In this document: positions 41,253-51,381 of the stretch, one piece after another
Layout of the letters: the number at the start of each line of letters is the position of its first letter
How positions within the stretch are numbered: the first letter of the stretch is position 1
DNA from: Oopsacas minuta
Lineage: Eukaryota > Animalia > Porifera
Direction of reading: 5' to 3'
Assembly (NCBI GenBank): GCA_024704765.1
Contig: JAKMXF010000144.1
Coordinates: 372,001 to 436,000 of the forward strand
Length of the DNA: 64,000 bases
Position numbers and translations under genes: made by a program
The notes under the pieces: model-generated
Databases searched by the model: none
What the model was told of the DNA's origin: nothing
Seen by the model: only the letters and a program-made list of their open reading frames with translations

Positions 41253-44200
41253 TTATTTCAAAACAATTTCCATAATCATCTGATTAAAAATCTCAAAAAT
41301 CTCATCGGTTACAGTCTGTGGATATTTCATAATCTGTTGAATACAGCTGCGACGTAACGATGTACAGATATCTCTGAAGATATAGCGACAAATCTTATTG
41401 GCTAACAAACACCAGTGAAACTCAATTGACAATACCAATAGTGCAACTGCGTTGTTAGGACTGATATGTCTGCCGAGGGAAGTTGTCACCTTGGTTTTAT
41501 AATTCATAATTAAAATATCAGTGGTGAAGAATAGAGATAAGAGATGTAGGAATTTTGTGAATAGATTTGACGAGCTAGTGGAAGAAGGATCATGATAACC
41601 TGGGAATATACTGGATTGGTCTTGTGTAGCTTTAAAAACATCTTTCAAAAGAATATTCATTGAAGGAGACAGTGATGTAGCATGATCTGTTAGAAAATTA
41701 ATATGTTTCAGTTGTATATCATTAGGATTCTGGAAATCTGTATTCTGATCTTGATCATGTGGCCATAACATATTCGAGATCGTAGGACACGAATAATCAC
41801 AGTAGTAAATCTGATGGATGATTGACTCAAAAATGAAAGCAGGGACAAGTGTGAAAGCGACACATGAACCACTAGAAGTGGCACGAGCCCATCTTATCAT
41901 AGCTCCCAATACATCTGAACTAGCTTCTATCTTATCCACATGTACTCGAAACGATTTATTTTCAACACAAAACTCAAAATCAAAATCTTTCTCATTGAAT
42001 TTTGAATAGAAACAAACGTTTGAGTTCTGTTCAGTAAAAACAGTTAAGTCATTAGAATCTAGGAGAGAAGCTTCTGTGTCTATATGAGGCCGTTTAGCCG
42101 GTGGACAATACTCAATGCTACCTACTTCAGGACGAATAGCTCTATTCAATTTATACTGACGTCTAGCTGATGAATCATATGAATAATCTTCATCACTTAG
42201 AGCACCAGAGCTAAGCTCACTACCTGAATCATCCATGTATTTAGACGGAGAGCGTGAGTACCATTGACTAGGCGTAGAGTTCATATAAGCTGTGTTATAG
42301 TCATGAGGGGGTGAATACGAGGATGGAGACTGAGAAGGAGGAGAGGTAGGAGAGAGACAGAGTCTATGGGGTAAGTCTGTTGGTATAGGTTTGTGTAGAA
42401 CTTCACATAGGTAGCTGAATGCTTTAATTGACTGCTGGAACTGTTCCTCATCAACTGGGTCAGATAGAATATTAATTAGAGAAGATACAGTCCCTGTGAA
42501 GTCATGGAAGAAACGTCTTTTGTGAGTTCTAAAATTTCACAATGAATAAATTCTGTAAAGTAAATTTTAGGAAATAACTCACCTGAATAAATATGGCAGA
42601 GATAGAACACAAGTTGTTCTCTCAACAGCTGATCCTTTCAGCATACTATTAATAACCCCCATTCCATACGGAGTCTCAGCTGTTCTGGTTATCTTATCCA
42701 TAAGATTGTACTCCTCTGTGGGTGCATACACCGGGCAATTACTCATATCAAGCTTGGATATGCCAATATATCCGGGAGGAAGGCTCTCAGCATGTATACA
42801 CAGTTCATAGAACAACGGAATGTTACCGTATCGTAGAAGCTTCTCAAAACAAGCATTATCTTGAGAAATACGCTGTAGTATCTTAACACACTTAAAGTGT
42901 GGATTACGAGAAACTAAGATGTATAGGATGAGAGCACGGAATATATCTGAAGAAGCTAGGTAGATGAGACAACTCTTTATGTGACTGATTCTGCAGGAAA
43001 ATACATATCGAAGTTAGGCAGAAACATTAGTAAGGTTATCATTAAGACTTTGCATAGTGAATTAATGGTACGACGAATTGTCCAGAGACACATATTCTCG
43101 GGAAGAAGGCACTCTAACCTACATTTTTGCAATTTTAAGCATATATAACAGATTCATAGTTTTCGAGATATGGCCATACAAGGTGGTTGATCCGCAATCA
43201 ATTGTGGTTATAAGATTTGACGTGGATTAGGGAGGTGTAACAAATCCCTGTAATTTCCTAGTATTACTCGTGTATGCATCAATGAGTATAATAAGTACTA
43301 ACTTAGATAGTAGATGTAATAGATGACATTCCATCCAGCTGATCAGAGATTGAGTATTACCAGCACCATCTGAGCTATCAGCTGATTGAATGAATGAGTC
43401 TGAAGCTAGGAAAGATAACTCATTCATTTGCATGTTTGTAGGGATGTGTATCTCTGTGGAAGAACTATCCTGTTCTGTATCTTCAGAGCTTGCCTTAATG
43501 GCCTCATTTATCCTAAATACAAGTGTTGAGAGGATGTTAAGAGAAAATAAATACAGTGCATGCAGGTTATAAGAACCCCCATATGAGTAGCAATAGATAT
43601 TCTTATAACCAGCTTATACTATATTAGTGGACAGGGTATACTTACTGTTGTAAGAGGTGAGTGAGTGTGTCTACGAGTTTTAATTGCTTAACCATGAAAA
43701 CAAACGATTCTTCATCATAATAGTAATGATTGATTGTGTGTAGTAGTTGTATTTTAGTTTTAACCGAATTGACCTCTTTCAAGACATCAATAATAAACTG
43801 TAACGCATTTGATAGTTTTATGTGTTGTCTGTTACTCGGATCATTACTACAACCTGACATTATATCAATCAAGTGTTGAGGCATTTCATTTGGAGGATAT
43901 GAACTCAGTTTGCTTAACAACAATTGTATCCCTCCTGCATTACCTATACTAGCACGTGTCTCACTAGAATTATTAAATTCCAGGAAACACTCCCAGGCAA
44001 CCGAACTGATTTGAGAGTTCTTGCTTTGACAGAGTTCTATAACTTTATAAACACCTCCATGAGAATTGAAACTAGAAGCGAGAATATCTTTTTTGTGACG
44101 TAGAATGTTTGTAAATATCTTCAGCACCTGAAGACAAGTAGAGAGTCATAAATATAACAAAATAAACAATAACAAGTGCTGTCTCTTGCTAACGTTAGAT

Positions 44201-47200
44201 ATTTTCAAGTGATTAATTGTCTACACTGCAGACAGTAATAATAAGAAATTCACTAAAACGCTGAAAATCTGGAGAATTTCATGAATAACAAAGCAAAATT
44301 ACAATTATAATTTTGAGGTCAGACAGAATATCGACTGAATAGCATAACGGTAGTCATAATTACTGATGGCGAACTTATTACGTAATTATAAATGTGATAA
44401 ATTACAACACGACAACACGTTGATTAGGCTAGCATCACTGTTAATACCACTGTATCTATGACGATATTGCGTATCAGTTTACCTTGAACCATAACCAATG
44501 GAGCATATATCAGCATGGCAAAGATTCAAATATAAGTACTTATTGCAAATAACATTCAGTTCTATAAGAAAATGTTGAAGTTCGTTTTGTTAATATTGGC
44601 ATTCATGTCATTAGTACATGGACAATGTAACGTAGGAGAGGTATTTATTGGTTGTGGTTCAGCGTGTGAGGACACCTGTGACAATTATCAAGATGTTGGT
44701 CGTATTTGCACTCTTCAGTGTGTGTCTGGTTGCTTTTGTGAGGGAAATAAGGTACGAGGACCTGGTGGAAGCTGTGTGGATATTCTAGAATGTTCACCTC
44801 AGTGTGATATTAACCAACAGTACGGATGTGGTAGTGAATGTCCTGATACCTGTGATAACTATAATGTATCTAGGAGCTGTATTGAGAGCTGCAGGTAATG
44901 ATAAGTTACATTATGACGTGGCAGTATACCACAATAGCACTATGACTAGTCAGTATAGTTAGAATCCATACAACGGCCATTACCGCTTTCTTGGCTCACA
45001 AATCTTATCAATAGCCACCGAATACGTGACATATAAATGTATGGTATTAATTCCGGTCAACTCCCATTATATCGAAGCTCAAGGGACCACGATAATTACT
45101 TCGATATAACAGGAGTAGATTGTATATTTATTTACAGGATTGGATGTTTTTGCAATCAAGGCTACGTTCTAATAGATGAGAACTCTAATGAATGCATACA
45201 CACATCAGAGTGTCCAGGGAGAGAAGGGTGTGCTATAGATGAGCACTACAGGATATGCGGGACAGCTTGTCCTACTACATGTGACAACAGAGGAGAGCAG
45301 ACAATTTGCCCGAGTGTATGCGTAGATGGATGTTTCTGTAACGACGGATTCGTATTGCATGAGGGACAATGTGTAAAGGAAGATACATGTCTTCAATTAC
45401 TGGGACTACTACCGAGTAAAGGAGCAGCTTTGGAGAATTTGGGATTACTTCTTATGCTAGCTAGCTTATTGGTTATCCTCCTCATAGGATTATAATCTAC
45501 TACCCTAAGTCCCCTAATAAAAAACTAAAAACATTCTCTAGATTTGGTAGCTCATTTTGAACAACATTTCTATTTTATTATCTTCATTCGCCCCTTATTT
45601 TGTCTGTTTGCGTTTTTTATGAAAAAATACATTTATATTCGTTCAAGGGTAGCCGGTAGGAGACAATACTACAATACACAAATATTCCTGTAAAAATCTC
45701 AATGATAATGTTATAGAGTAATTAATTAATGAAATATAATTAATTTGTCCTGCTATGCAGACAATATTATTCCTACAGACTAAATATTATCTATTCAAGT
45801 GGATAAACGTATAACAACACTGACATAATATTATATCACCAAAACTGGCCTGGAACGATATTACAACCATTGAATGAGAAGACAAAACAATTTGTCTAAG
45901 AAAAGTGGTTCTACGCGAAGGAAATTAAGCCACTTGGTTTTATATCGGAGGAGGACGACTCCAGAAATGCTCAAGTAATGGAAAATCAAATATCTATTTA
46001 AACAAAAGACTTTAAGGTTACTGAAAAAGAAAAGATGAATATTCTAAAATCAATAATACTGATTGTAATAATAGCTACTGCAGCACAAGCCAGGCAAATA
46101 TGTGGACCAAATCAGGAGTATAAAGAATGTGGTTGTCACGTTACATGTAAGAATTTCCTTAACCTAACAATTTGTGATGAGAGGAGCTGCGTAGAGGACT
46201 GTTTTTGTAAAAGTTACTTTGCTTTAAACAGTACTGGACATTGCGTAGATATCTTCAGCTGTAACAGACCTACAAATCCTTGTGGAGAAGATGAAGTGCA
46301 TTGGGAATGTGGGACCGCTTGTCCACCTACTTGTGATGATCCTAATCCAGAGTGTGAAGAATACTGCCAAGCTGGATGTGTATGTAAGGAGAGTACTGTT
46401 AGGAACAGTGATGGAGATTGTGTTACTGTAAGTGATTGCCCTAAGGACCCAGAAGATCCTAGTAAAGAGGAGTGTGTGGGGAATCAAGTCTACGTTGAGT
46501 GCAAATCAAACTGTCCATACACTTGTAATAACTGCTATGATGAAGTTAACTGTGAAAATATAACTTGCACGTAAGTATATTGTTATTGAATAATTTCATA
46601 AACGAGCTAATTACGTATATTATTGTAGGCCTGGCTGTGATTGCAAAGATGGGTTCGTCCTAGCTGATAACACTCACAATGTGTGTATTCAAGAGTCTGA
46701 ATGCCAAGACTCATCAGGTGAAGAACATGATAAGGATAAAGATGATGATAACGATGAGGATAATACAGGTTCAGATAGAGGTCATGGTAAGGGTAGGAAA
46801 GGGCATGATCATGAAGATAATACAGGTTCAGATAGAGGTCATGGTAAGGATAGGAACGGGCATGATCATGAGGATAATACAGGTTCAGATAGAGGTCATG
46901 GTAAGGATAGGAACGGGCATGATCATGAGGATAATACAGGTTCAGATAGAGGCCATGGTAAGGATAGGAACGGGCATGATCATGAGGATAATACAGGTTC
47001 AGATAGAGGTCATGGAAATGATGAGAATAGGGACAATGGTAAACACGGTCATGGACATGGAAAAAATAACAATGAAAGAAAAAGGCGGCCAAAGCCAAAC
47101 CCACATTAAGTTATTAACTTGTTAGCATAATTATATTACCAGTAATTTTTGCATATATTATGTATACACGTACATAGGTACATTAAGTTGTACAAATATT

Positions 47201-50200
47201 ATAGTGTGTAATTAGATATTGTAAGAATGGGCAGTCCTTAAGCAAGTCATAAAGGAAGTGATCCCAAGGTGTCAGTTATATGATACCGTAAATTAATATT
47301 CATACAATCACATAATGTTACATTACCATTGCAAATAACAAGTTCAAAATGACTCATCTCTGAACTATCAACCCTGCCTAGGCAATAAGGCTGTAACATG
47401 ATCCTGCTATAACCACCATCTTGTATACTTCTGAGTATAAATATAGAATTACCCTAGACTTGTTACTATTCTACAAAATCTACAATGCGGACGTACATTA
47501 TTTCTGCATTATTAATTGCAGTAGCTGCCATAGCAGTACATGCACTAACAGAAACTTGTAAAGAGGGTGAAGTATACAATCTATGTGGTAGCGCATGTCC
47601 CGAGACCTGTTTTGACACTTCAGAAGTGATATGTACCCAACAATGCGTTCCAGGGTGCTATTGTGAGGAAGGTAAAGTTAGGAACAAAAACGAACAATGT
47701 GTAGATAGAGTGAACTGTTTCGTTGATGAATTGCCACTTCGTTGTGATCCTCTAGAGGAGAAATGTTCCCTGGGTAAGGATCTGGTAGATGAGTTGATAA
47801 ACGGAATTGGACCAATACATATAGAGGACATCCCCAAATTACCAATCCCCGCAATACCGGAAATACCCGTAGGAGATCGTCCAACAAGGCCAGATCGACC
47901 CACGGGTGATCGTCCAGGCCGTCCCACTGGAGATCGTCCAGAACGTCCCACTGGAGATCGTCCAGACCGTCCCACTGGAGATCGTCCAGACCGTCCCACA
48001 GGGGATCGTCCAGATCGACCCACTGGAGATCGTCCACACCGTCCTACTGGAGATCGTCCAGACCGTCCCACAGGGGATCGTCCACACCGTCCTACTGGAG
48101 ATCGTCCAGACCGTCCCACAGGGGATCGTCCACACCGTCCCACTGGAGATCGTCCAGACCGGCCCACTGGAGATCGTCCAGAACGTCCCACTGGAGATCG
48201 TCCAGAACGTCCCACTGGAGATCGTCCAGACCGTCCCACAGGGGATCGTCCAGGCCGTCCCACTGGAGATCGTCCAGAACGTCCCACTGGAGATCGTCCA
48301 GACCGTCCCACTGGAGATCGTCCAGAACGTCCCACTGGAGATCGTCCAGACCGTCCCACAGGGGATCGTCCAGATCGACCCACTGGAGATCGTCCACACC
48401 GTCCTACTGGAGATCGTCCACACCGTCCCACAGGGGATCGTCCACACCGTCCTACTGGAGATCGTCCAGACCGTCCCACAGGGGATCGTCCACACCGTCC
48501 CACTGGAGATCGTCCAGACCGGCCCACTGGAGATCGTCCACACCGTCCTACTGGAGATCGTCCAGACCGTCCCATAGGGGATCGTCCCGTAAGGCCAGAT
48601 CGACCTGATGGAGATAGACCAACAAGACCGGCTAGACCTGATGGAGATCGTCCAACAAGACCAGCTCGACCTGATGGAGATAGACCAACAAGACCGGCTA
48701 GACCTGATGGAGACAGGTCAAGGTACCACGGAAGGAGCCACTCCTAACCAGCTGATTAGCTGAATTTCCAATAAAATAATTGTAAATACTCTCCTTTGTA
48801 GTTTGTGTGTATATCTCTAGAAACTTTCTGATATAATTAATACTTGTAAATAGGTCATAACTTCAAGCTATATATCTGTTATGTGAATAGTATTTAATAA
48901 ATCATATTCTTATCTTATTGAAAAGTTAAAACAAATTGTAAATCTTGTTAAACTGGTCATCTTTTGAAGTCAATGACTGACAAATATCTAAAGATCGAAA
49001 GTCACACACCTTAGACAAGGAGAGAGGGAGCTTGGGAGCTTAAACACCCACACCCACTGTTTTCTACTATTAATATAAACCATTATGGACAAAAATAGTA
49101 AACTCCCACTTGATATTATAAGCCTCCTCCTCCCACCCACTTTGAATAGTTGTCTACCTGGGTCATATATGTACAGTAACATACGTATGTCTATTTGTAG
49201 CCGAAACACAAAATTTTGTTTTACTAATACAGTATGTAATAAAAGTGAATCTTGAAAAATAGTCAATCAACACATCTGCGTCACCAGCATTTATGGCTAT
49301 AAATACAGTTAAAATCAGTGTTTGTTATTATCATAAAAATCTACAATGAAGACATTCATAATAACTACGCTAACAATCACGGTAATTGCCCTTACAGTAC
49401 AAGTGGTAATTGCCATTCCAGCTCCAACTTGTAAGGAGGGCGAAGAAATCAGGAATTCATGTAATGCAACTGAGAGAACTTGCACAAGACCGAATGAAGA
49501 GCCAGAGACTGTCCCAACAACCTCATCAGGCCTACAATGTTGCTGTAAGGGCGACCTAGTTAGAAATGACGATGGAAACTGTGTTCTACTTAATGAGTGT
49601 GATGCTGAGGATGTTGAAGATAGTGATAGTGATAGTGATAGTGATAATGATAGTGATAGTGATAGTGATAGTGATAGTGATAGTGATAGTGATAGTGATA
49701 GTGATAGTGATAGTGATAGTGATAGTGATAGTGATAGTGATAGTGATGATGAATGTGAAAGACCAAAAGGAAGAAGACGTCATAAACATAGACATCGTGG
49801 AAGAGGCAGGAAAGGTCGTCCATGCAAATATCCCAAAACAACTACCAGTACTACCGCAACTAATGCAACTACGGTAGCCACCGGTACTACCGAAATTACC
49901 GGAATTACCGGAAATACTACAACTACCAGTACTAACGCAACTGCGGTAACCACGGGTACTACCGCAATTCCCGGAACTACAGAACCAGAGGATGTAGGTG
50001 ACTTTGGAGAATTACCAAGTAGCAGGGAAAATCCAGATGGAGGACAAGAAGGAGGGCGGAGACTACCACGACCAAGAAGAACCAGTGATCACATCTTCAG
50101 AAACAAGAGGTCGCTCAGAAGTATCATGCCCTAAAACTTTCTAATCAGCTGATCTTACAATTAGTTTTTAGTTATCTATACTTAAGGTGCTATATGTTTG

Positions 50201-51381
50201 TATAAAGTGATACTTATTTGTATTGTGTATAGGATTTGTAGAAATAAACAGATATGCTTCTTATACTTTGCCATCTTAGTCTATTCGTTAAAAATAGTGA
50301 GTGAGAGGTAAACAGGAATAATTAGATATATTGTACTACTACGAATTTGTATGTTAGCAAGAGAAGTGGACACAATCGTAATATCTAATAACTGACCTCA
50401 ATAATAGTACTGTCTTCTTCTATTCTATGCGAGTACTCTAGCAGTATTGTAATCCCACTAGTATCAATCATACGGACACAGATATGAAGTGAGTGTGTTA
50501 GTCCAGTGAATAGCTTGATAACAGACATAATAGACTTATTATCCTCACGATTGAATGCTCCTAGCAACATCTCCACTAAACCCAGCTCACATAACAGCTC
50601 TATATGATGTGGTTTATGTACTTTTAACACGAATAACAACTTCACAACATCTGACCATAGCTTTCCCCTGTTCTCAATCTCTCCATCTGATAATATGTTT
50701 ATTAAACACTTCAGTGTGTCATTCGATAAAATCTGAATTAAAATAAATAAAACCGCCTACACTGTAATTACAGGTAACATCATAAATATCAAATGGAAAT
50801 ATGCTATAGTTATATTGAATTTCAAGATGGTATATTTTGACTACAATACAATCAGAGTTCGAGAGTACAGTGGTTATCGCATACATCCTTGGGAGTAACA
50901 AAATATAAATCATACACAAGAGTATATGATAACCGTTTTCCCCAGGGATGTTACGATATGTGATATGTTCTTAGAAGCGATAATATACGTAAATGTGATC
51001 TCAGGGCACTTTAGGTATTTCGAAATAACTTACAGATGATTGCACTAAGTTAGATTGTATACAGCAGTTCCCCAAAATACCAACAATAAGTGAGATCAGC
51101 TGAGAATGCTCCATGTGAGATTGTATGACGTAATCTCTTGTGTAGTATATTAGAATTGTTACAAGCAACTTCAAGCCCTGTAGATCTCTGAAAGAACGTA
51201 CATTAGGTTTTGAATTGACATGCTTCATCAGTACACGAAGCTGGACCAGAATATTTGGAATATTCTTATCTTCAAAACAAACATTCAATTTGTTAATCTC
51301 TTCAGTAAAGTTTAAAGTAATCTCAGAAACTTTCTTGGTGTTTTTTTCAGAGGCAGATTCACTTTTCGTGCACGTTGTCAT
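41253..51381 (-). CDS. ARMC5: Armadillo repeat-containing protein 5 (ARM + C-terminal BTB), multi-exon with a 6.27-kb intron
   Basis: Exon 1 51381-51034 (L..LR.......V.SFR...GL..LV.IL...ILGNCC), exon 2 50732-50397, and GAG|GTCAGT at 50396 joining ttgtcttcag|GTG at 44127 (phase 0). ARM exons run 44.1-42.6 kb and the BTB-like terminal exon reads [14 protein letters not shown]. Confidence 0.85.
43554..43620. mobile_element. MITE family 3 short copy (ARMC5 intron)
   Basis: GGTTATAAGA...GAGTAGCAATA...TTATAACCAG matches the reverse complement of about 8120-8166 and starts TA|CAGTG. Confidence 0.55.
44572..45495 (+). CDS. Secreted/anchored protein with 3 TIL (trypsin-inhibitor-like Cys-rich) domains and a hydrophobic C-terminus (TIL-A); exons 44572-44894, 45138-45495
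   Basis: Signal peptide, three C..C.S.C..TC...C...C..GCFC...C..C units, phase-2 intron, and tail [28 protein letters not shown]. Confidence 0.9.
45054..45122. mobile_element. MITE family 2 copy, 69 bp (in the TIL-A intron)
   Basis: CGGTCAACTCCCATTATATCGAAG ... CTTCGATATAACAGGAGTAGATTG|TA: imperfect 24-bp TIRs around a 21-nt core. Confidence 0.7.
46035..47109 (+). CDS. Secreted protein with 3 TIL domains and a His/Asp/Gly-rich repeat tail (TIL-B); exons 46035-46570, 46629-47109
   Basis: Signal peptide; AC|GTAAGT...TTGTAG|G completes the third TIL domain ([14 protein letters not shown]); tail ([19 protein letters not shown])n. Confidence 0.9.
46756..47016 (+). repeat. 57-bp coding tandem repeat, 4 full copies and 1 partial
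   Basis: The unit encodes [19 protein letters not shown]; unit starts at 46756 and 46813 are 57 bp apart. Confidence 0.95.
47436..47443 (+). promoter_or_regulatory. TATA-like element of TIL-C
   Basis: TATAAATA about 41 nt before AAAATCTACA-ATG; the same element and spacing occur at TIL-D. Confidence 0.5.
47485..48747 (+). CDS. Secreted protein with 1 TIL domain and a long RPTGDRP[D/E/H/G] repeat tail (TIL-C), intronless
   Basis: Signal peptide, [19 protein letters not shown]...[12 protein letters not shown], about 29 octamers, then three [11 protein letters not shown] units. Confidence 0.9.
47896..48714 (+). repeat. 24-bp coding tandem repeat (about 29 copies) followed by a 33-bp repeat (about 3 copies)
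   Basis: Unit like CGTCCCACTGGAGATCGTCCAGAC; variation falls at synonymous sites and at one codon (D/E/H/G). Confidence 0.95.
49298..49305 (+). promoter_or_regulatory. TATA-like element of TIL-D
   Basis: TATAAATA about 40 nt before AAAATCTACA-ATG. Confidence 0.5.
49346..50134 (+). CDS. Secreted protein with a degenerate TIL domain, poly-(Asp-Ser), an Arg/His/Lys block and a Thr-rich region (TIL-D), intronless
   Basis: Signal peptide; TCKEGEE..SC...RTC...[21 protein letters not shown] (8 Cys); about 21 DS pairs; [24 protein letters not shown]; Thr-rich stalk; C-terminal RNKR. Confidence 0.88.
   Translation: MKTFIITTLTITVIALTVQVVIAIPAPTCKEGEEIRNSCNATERTCTRPNEEPETVPTTSSGLQCCCKGDLVRNDDGNCVLLNECDAEDVEDSDSDSDSDNDSDSDSDSDSDSDSDSDSDSDSDSDSDSDSDSDDECERPKGRRRHKHRHRGRGRKGRPCKYPKTTTSTTATNATTVATGTTEITGITGNTTTTSTNATAVTTGTTAIPGTTEPEDVGDFGELPSSRENPDGGQEGGRRLPRPRRTSDHIFRNKRSLRSIMP
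49619..49744 (+). repeat. (GATAGT)n hexamer microsatellite encoding (Asp-Ser)n
   Basis: About 21 units with a single GATAAT interruption, in frame within TIL-D. Confidence 0.95.

Follow-up and report, generated by a model that had tools for sequence, protein, structure and literature searches.

Relation to described silica-forming systems

The pairing of polyions, or zwitterionic pairing, is well established for silica-active proteins: silaffins work via a zwitterionic motif, and polyamines require a polyanion (silacidin, phosphate) for silica precipitation (PMC11733937). In the glass sponges (Hexactinellida), Francis et al. (2023; R Soc Open Sci, PMC10282587) screened Aphrocallistes vastus for compositionally biased proteins and described Avas.s003.g337, which carries three TIL domains and a HEH(N/Q) tract, is ~50-fold up in the growing osculum, and has LOD99_1276 as its orthologue in Oopsacas minuta. 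The same study reported four TIL genes in tandem in O. minuta and in A. vastus, one A. vastus member appearing incomplete, and proposed them as candidates for a silica-matrix scaffold. Here we analyze the last gene of the O. minuta locus, TIL-D, which lies at 49346-50134 on the forward strand of a 64-kb stretch of contig JAKMXF010000144.1 (positions 372,001 to 436,000). This whole stretch is referred to as the window; coordinates are window positions unless another contig is named, and genome searches covered 61,460,524 bases in 365 contigs.

The cluster as a silica scaffold is an already published proposal, and the architecture of TIL-D is the unreported detail: its design, a run of Asp-Ser (DS) pairs followed by a basic loop, is undescribed in the main text of the cluster study (PMC10282587). 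The hexactinellid silicifying proteins accepted later are hexaxilin, glassin and perisilin only, with TIL unmentioned (PMC10772126; PMC12978542). Perisilin and glassin follow a head-plus-variable-tail design, and further uncharacterized silicifying proteins are expected (Shimizu et al., 2024; PMC10772126).

Like the published hexactinellid TIL candidates, TIL-D belongs to a four-gene tandem locus and combines a signal peptide and a TIL head with a species-specific, charged low-complexity tail. Unlike the published one, a His-rich protein with three TIL domains (TIL-B in this work), TIL-D has one degenerate TIL domain with eight cysteines and a tail made of a DS tract, a basic loop and a Thr-rich segment. 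With the silaffins and silacidins of diatoms it shares the combination of a Ser/Asp polyanion, an Arg/Lys polycation and multibasic sites in a silica-forming organism, and by analogy charge-driven assembly may be proposed for TIL-D as well. In contrast to silaffins, whose charge comes chiefly from phosphoserine and polyamine-modified lysine, its negative charge comes from plain Asp, and it belongs to a separate animal lineage and is of independent origin. No sequence relationship to silaffins or silacidins was detected among 1.84 billion representative proteins, and the likeness is functional and architectural only.

The TIL-D gene and its predicted product

TIL-D is an intact, single-exon open reading frame of 262 codons. 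Its features, all on the forward strand, are as follows.

49298..49305, +, TATA box TATAAATA found by direct reading, 41-48 nt 5' of the ATG and aligning with TATAAATA 5' of TIL-C
49346..49414, +, signal-type N-terminus, residues 1-23, from the hydropathy profile and alignment with the TIL-C signal peptide
49430..49600, +, degenerate 8-Cys TIL-like domain, residues 29-85, from a Pfam match below cut-off, alignment with the TIL-C head, and structure models
49601..49753, +, polyanionic block DAEDVE-(DS)4-DN-(DS)16-DDE, residues 86-136, net charge -28
49619..49747, +, coding microsatellite (GATAGT)21.5 with a single GATAAT variant (TRF: period 6, 21.5 copies, 98% matches)
49754..49825, +, basic loop Cys137...Cys160, with 12 Arg/Lys and 3 His within 22 residues; no tandem repeat encodes the loop
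49829..49990, +, Thr-rich, mucin-like segment, residues 162-215, with three N-x-T sequons and a ~66-bp unit present twice
49991..50134, +, unique C-terminal tail and stop codon, with RPRR at 50069-50080 and RNKR at 50099-50110
50243..50248, +, AATAAA polyadenylation-type signal found by direct reading, 109 nt past the stop

At the base composition of the window, a run of 262 codons without a stop in such AT-rich DNA has a chance of p ~1e-8, and the non-repeat parts alone would be stop-free with chances of ~1e-3 and ~1e-4. The G+C content of the window is 30-46%, and that of the published Oopsacas minuta (Hexactinellida) assembly is 36% (PMC10280926). The ESM Atlas holds a 262-aa sequence identical to TIL-D, and the reading frame has thus previously been called as a protein. 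We also considered the DS tract as an intron and rejected this, as GT...AG pairs within the repeat would delimit introns of 6k+1 bases, whose removal breaks the frame, and consensus splice signals are absent. TIL-D is therefore best described as a real gene, with a product that is predicted to be of the secreted type, mostly disordered and probably glycosylated. At its N-terminus, MK is followed by ~21 mainly hydrophobic residues, and V-I-A at 21-23 is a plausible signal-peptidase site, placed by a heuristic from the hydropathy profile.

A canonical TIL domain has ten cysteines that form five disulfides, 1-7, 2-6, 3-5, 4-10 and 8-9 (Pfam description). The original prediction, made from the letters of this DNA, had described the TIL-D head as a degenerate TIL with eight cysteines, a CCC triplet and a broken ten-Cys pattern, and this is borne out by the cysteine positions (29, 39, 46, 65, 66, 67, 79 and 85, with the triplet at 65-67) and by the alignment of the TIL domains of the cluster. 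In this alignment Cys1, 2, 4, 7, 8, 9 and 10 are retained and the canonical Cys3, Cys5 and Cys6 are gone, while one new cysteine between Cys7 and Cys8 creates the triplet. Since Cys3 and Cys5 are partners of each other, and the new cysteine could take over the pairing of Cys6 with Cys2, the head could still form four disulfides.

The assignment of the head to the TIL family receives mixed support. Pfam TIL (PF01826) matches TIL-D over profile positions 1-55 of 55, but at 13.2 bits (E 0.11), under the curated cut-off of 24.5 bits, and a genome-wide scan for TIL domains at E <= 0.01 did not recover this one. An AF2 model of residues 26-88 has a pLDDT of 74.7, a value obtained with an alignment of six paralogues that biases the model towards TIL. 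In a Foldseek comparison of this model with the PDB, the top matches are all TIL proteins (1ccv, with TM 0.64/0.71; NAP5, LL-TIL and VWF), every one of them with E > 0.1, and residues 13-87 of the ESM Atlas model align to TIL clusters. Paralogy to the head of TIL-C (see below) upholds the assignment, and at the level of sequence the TIL-D head is a descendant of a bona fide TIL gene.

Behind the head, the tract predicted as about 21 DS pairs is present, its exact make-up being 20 DS pairs and one DN. With 28 Asp/Glu residues the tract is polyanionic without any modification. Directly adjoining it is the block of Arg, His and Lys between two cysteines that the prediction had placed there, Cys137-Cys160, with a charge of +12 (plus 3 His); the pI of the whole protein is 4.6. 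Disulfide closure of this loop is probable, given the even number of cysteines, and TIL-C likewise has two additional cysteines past its TIL domain. The Thr-rich stretch with sequons was also read correctly: it is an internal duplication of the ~66-bp unit, and its three sequons belong to a total set at N40, N101, N173, N190 and N197. Pfam Mucin-like matches TIL-D weakly and below cut-off (E 0.006). The basic sites are RPRR at residues 242-245 and RNKR at 252-255; the latter had been called terminal, and it is present near the end, with 7 residues remaining behind it. For the entire protein the ESM Atlas model is of low quality (pLDDT 0.47, pTM 0.25), as would fit disorder beyond the head. The reading of TIL-D as a block polyampholyte of the secreted type thus fits the signal-type N-terminus and the opposed blocks, although secretion itself is a prediction.

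Probable origin of TIL-D in the tandem TIL cluster

Four TIL gene units, all on the forward strand, lie within 44573-50134, and TIL-D is the last. The other three are the following.

44573..45495, +, TIL-A: signal peptide and TIL exon (44573 to ~44897), intron, TIL domains and hydrophobic C-terminus; TIL matches at 44626-44793 and 45229-45390
46035..47109, +, TIL-B: three TIL stretches (Pfam 78.3 bits) and His/Asp/Gly 57-bp repeats
47485..48747, +, TIL-C: signal peptide, canonical 10-Cys TIL domain (Pfam 44.1 bits) and ~29 RPTGDRPx octamers (24-bp repeat x29)

TIL-C is the nearest paralogue of TIL-D. The two heads are 36% identical (pairwise E 0.001), and the genes have in common the TATA box, the 5' leader (AAAATCTACAATG), the signal peptide and the start of the mature protein, TCKEGE. 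Past the TIL domain no similarity between the two was detectable (214/500 shuffles scored at least as high; the DS tract was taken out for this one alignment). The repeat-encoded charged tail differs in each member of the cluster, and only in TIL-D are a strongly anionic and a strongly cationic block joined in a single chain. We regard it as very likely that TIL-D is a real member of the cluster, of which it is the fourth and most derived. Its origin would lie in the tandem duplication of a TIL-C-like gene, after which the copy kept its promoter, leader and signal peptide along with a head decayed to 8 Cys, and gained a new low-complexity tail through repeat expansion.

Searches for relatives elsewhere were blank. 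A HMMER search with the last 126 residues found no match at E <= 0.001 among 1.84 billion representative proteins, and word-index searches with residues 1-90, with residues 136-262 and with the N-terminal piece alone gave nothing. The whole protein, compared with its own genome, matched itself and three weak acidic tracts only, and no relatives came up when metagenomes were scanned with the head of TIL-B and its three TIL domains. Look-ups of the exact sequence were blank for TIL-D and its neighbors, and equally for ordinary housekeeping reading frames of the window. These results mean that there are no detectable relatives elsewhere, and they have no bearing on the annotation or expression of TIL-D.

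Head and tail without detectable orthologues would also be expected of a recently duplicated, rapidly evolving gene that has hardly any specific function or none, whose tail arose by neutral slippage and segmental duplication and in which the adjacency of acidic and basic blocks is incidental. The loss of three canonical cysteines with a Pfam TIL score below cut-off, the 98% purity of the DS microsatellite, which suggests a recent expansion, and the recent duplication of the Thr-rich part fit this explanation. On the other hand, the 262 codons have stayed intact in AT-rich DNA at the low chance given above, and promoter, leader and signal peptide have been kept in common with TIL-C. The cysteine count is still even, since Cys3 and Cys5, both lost, pair with each other and the adjacent new cysteine makes up for Cys6. 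With a repeat unit of six bases, moreover, slippage preserves the frame. On balance we consider a duplicate of this kind unlikely.

Several observations concern the remaining members and loci of the family. The first exon of TIL-A runs from the ATG at 44573 to a GT donor near 44897, with an open reading frame at 45037-45495 after the intron, and from its hydrophobic C-terminus the product may be membrane-tethered or tethered through a glycosylphosphatidylinositol (GPI) anchor. TIL-B fits the description of LOD99_1276 by Francis et al. (2023; PMC10282587). Its third TIL domain is split across the reading frames 46035-46574 and 46681-47109, ahead of the 57-bp repeats, which points to a short intron within the domain (46574-46681). 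Two more TIL loci, G000:C133:536950-538848 and G000:C288:316775-318111, bring the number genome-wide to three; one of these two is an uninterrupted frame of 836 aa containing seven or more TIL domains, and the other comprises three TIL-bearing reading frames on the minus strand.

Proposed phosphorylation and convertase processing

Long Asp/Ser tracts occur in phosphophoryn (DSPP) and other acidic biomineral proteins, and the original prediction called the DS block phosphophoryn-like, citing S-x-E/pS tracts as substrates of secretory FAM20C-type kinases. The comparison holds for composition, as both have a long polyanionic Asp-Ser tract in a secreted-type protein, and it does not extend to homology. 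Unlike phosphophoryn, TIL-D repeats DS and not DSS, and the Asp-Ser biomineral proteins belong to a calcium-phosphate or carbonate setting and depend on Fam20C.

As far as it can be tested, the step of Fam20C-type phosphorylation is contradicted. The number of S-x-E motifs in the TIL-D tract is 0; its serines are S-x-S and S-x-x-D/E. The genome contains one Fam20 locus, a spliced gene at G000:C312:108041-109470 (L005). Its three exons, queried singly and unjoined against PDB sequences, all score higher with the Hydra Fam20B xylosylkinase (5xom) than with Fam20C (48.8 versus 35.1, 44.8 versus 31.2 and 81.6 versus 70.6 bits). As the three exons tested are all closer to Fam20B, this glass sponge probably does without a Fam20C-type secretory kinase. 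In the sponge Amphimedon, the single Fam20 has Gal-Xyl as a substrate but leaves casein, osteopontin and enamelin unphosphorylated (Zhang et al., 2018; PMC5865150). The lack of S-x-E, the Fam20B-like gene and the Amphimedon result together weaken the Fam20C step, although other kinases may still phosphorylate the tract. A genome with only a Fam20B-like kinase also bears on claims of vertebrate-style phosphorylation of sponge matrix proteins.

We therefore consider it extremely unlikely that TIL-D is a phosphoprotein strictly of the phosphophoryn type, modified by a Fam20C-type Golgi kinase and serving in Ca2+ binding or mineral nucleation. Apart from the resemblance of the tract to DSPP and other acidic biomineral proteins, such a role would accord with the finding that 20/20 serines fit the acidophilic motif S-x-x-D/E, and with most of them being S-x-S hierarchical phosphorylation is conceivable. 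It is opposed by the missing S-x-E, by the lone Fam20 gene, which is Fam20B-like exon by exon, by the xylosylkinase activity of the sponge Fam20 that has been tested, and by the skeleton of the animal, which is silica and not a calcium mineral; nor is there homology to SIBLING proteins in Pfam or among the 1.84 billion representatives.

Processing by a proprotein convertase is easier to accommodate. The genome encodes a furin homologue (P domain 77.8 bits; 520 bits to furin across the catalytic and P domains), and with RPRR and RNKR sites in a secretory-type protein processing is feasible; both the R-x-K/R-R sites and a furin-type enzyme are in place, cleavage itself being predicted. The proposed cut at RNKR would have a small effect, releasing 7 residues only, and a cut at RPRR would release 17. 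K-G-R-R-R within the basic loop is a further possible site.

A signal peptide, a Thr-rich stretch with sequons, the weak Mucin-like match, an Arg-rich cationic loop between two cysteines and multibasic sites in a genome that encodes furin could also describe a secreted mucus, surface or defense protein outside the skeleton, in which the acidic block shields a cationic loop closed by cysteines, much as the anionic propieces of host-defense peptides do, and the head derives from a protease-inhibitor-type TIL. TIL domains are classically protease inhibitors, and three of the four A. vastus cluster genes are not specific to the growth zone, which also speaks for such a protein. However, the cationic block is internal, with ~100 more residues behind the loop, nor does a convertase site separate the acidic block from the basic one. 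Three cysteines are lost and the stretch from Cys4 to Cys7, with the inhibitor loop, is replaced, which makes inhibitor activity of TIL-D unlikely, and no homology to a known antimicrobial peptide or mucin was found in Pfam or among the 1.84 billion representatives. A mucus or defense role is improbable.

The GATA[C/G]T tracts of the genome

The microsatellite that encodes the DS tract is rare. Runs of at least 5 GATAGT units occur in the 61-Mb genome in TIL-D and in one short, imperfect run, so that (GATAGT)n as a common genomic microsatellite, which we had considered, is ruled out by its near-uniqueness. Runs of at least 4 GATA[C/G]T units are found in three places genome-wide, two of them long and both of these coding; the third is a non-coding AATACT/GATACT microsatellite. 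The second long run is a perfect (GATACT)14, encoding (DT)14, at G000:C111:164997-165096 (L003:1533-1632), and it is the only other long tract of Asp alternating with a hydroxy residue in the genome.

The (DS)n and (DT)14 tracts have common flanks, TGTTGAA before the repeat and GATGATGAA after it (7/7 and 9/9 bases, encoding V-E and D-D-E). In TIL-D the region compared is 49612-49753; the repeats differ by one base per unit, and there is no likeness past the flanks. Across the genome TGTTGAAGATASTGATAST is matched perfectly at two sites only, the two coding tracts. Either a small cassette of common origin or convergent slippage from similar acidic seeds may account for this. The host of the (DT)14 tract is a perisilin-type protein, which resembles TIL-D in its coding GATA[C/G]T run, its secreted-type low-complexity sequence and the same immediate flanks. 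Unlike TIL-D it belongs to another gene family, in a perisilin/CAP neighborhood, and has His-Gly and His-Asp blocks, a hydrophobic C-terminus and Thr for Ser.

The SD repeats of the staphylococcal Clf/Sdr proteins, which are cell-wall-anchored adhesins, are likewise based on a DNA hexamer and are variable in length, and they form an extended, glycosylated spacer. They use the same dipeptide, and by analogy with them a spacer role would be an alternative, mechanical reading of the TIL-D tract. In contrast to TIL-D they have no basic loop and no TIL domain, and the proteins are otherwise unrelated.

The reading frame that hosts (DT)14, L003:1045-2052, has a signal peptide and is rich in His-Gly and His-Asp. 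Its frame shifts in a CATGGT run near L003:1685-1695 ('ggtcatgtcatgg'); the alternate frame is His/Asp/Gly-rich and then has a Ser-rich stretch and a GPI-like hydrophobic tail at ~2050. Either a 1-base error in the assembly or a genuine break of the frame accounts for the change. Downstream of it, at L003:2634-2981, lies a reading frame with a CAP domain (Pfam CAP 22.7 bits). The only other 5-unit GATAGT run, with one mismatch, is found on contig C188 in a short reading frame, L019:1382-1753, that combines three MPTEGSTNLGSDYQDI repeats with (DS)5 and lacks both a signal peptide and a Pfam family.

A possible role in the silica skeleton

The overall explanation that we favor is that TIL-D is a cluster member encoding a block polyampholyte that takes part in electrostatic skeletal assembly; we hold it tentatively, at somewhat less than an even chance. 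Assembly would take place in the extracellular space in which the skeleton is formed. The basic loop would bind polyanions, for instance silica surfaces, silicate oligomers and acidic stretches in TIL-D itself or its neighbors, and the acidic block would act as the counter-polyion, as in zwitterionic silaffin or in silacidin-plus-polyamine systems. The Thr-rich part may be a glycosylated spacer, and furin may trim the basic C-terminus. By analogy with these systems, the design is compatible with silica templating. In favor of the explanation speak the gene signals, the paralogy to TIL-C, the TIL-like fold, the published candidacy of the cluster with one A. vastus member raised in the growing osculum, the variable charged tails that recall perisilin and glassin, the (DT)14 tract in a perisilin-type protein, the theme of polyion pairing and the presence of furin.

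That TIL-D acts in the formation of silica or of the skeletal matrix is, taken by itself, a doubtful proposition, and several observations weigh against the explanation above. Transcription, secretion, modification and location of TIL-D are predictions from the gene sequence. The two charges are unequal, at -28 versus +12, and the loss of three canonical cysteines could signal relaxed constraint. The Fam20C step finds neither S-x-E serines in the tract nor, probably, a Fam20C-type protein kinase in the genome. As the tail has no detectable orthologue, its conservation cannot be shown. In A. vastus the four genes are not co-regulated and only g337, the His-rich orthologue of TIL-B, is differentially expressed (PMC10282587), and the report of Shimizu et al. 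(2024) on hexactinellid silica extracts makes no mention of TIL proteins (PMC10772126).

A more specific version of the skeletal reading would make TIL-D a single-chain analogue of silacidin plus polycation that templates extracellular silica, assembling with itself or with its His-rich and RPTGDRP-repeat TIL neighbors, and would make VE-(D[S/T])n-DDE a mobile or recurrent module of hexactinellid skeleton proteins; this combination we consider quite improbable. The charge logic of TIL-D is that known to drive the precipitation of silica in diatoms. If TIL-D does template silica, animals and diatoms would have converged on it, and an active TIL-D would provide a compact, fully genetically encoded pair of silica-templating peptides for which no polyamine modification is needed.

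Genomic surroundings of the cluster

The TIL cluster is flanked by reading frames on the opposite strand. On one side lie an ARM exon (Pfam ARM_ARMC5, 80.9 bits) at 43642-44127 (-) and a BTB-like reading frame at 41253-42284 (-); on the other are ARM-like reading frames at 50385-51381 (-), which are below the ARMC5 profile. It is plausible that the cluster is nested in a ~6.2 kb intron of an ARMC5-like gene. The glassin gene is reported to lie within another gene in both sponges (PMC10282587).

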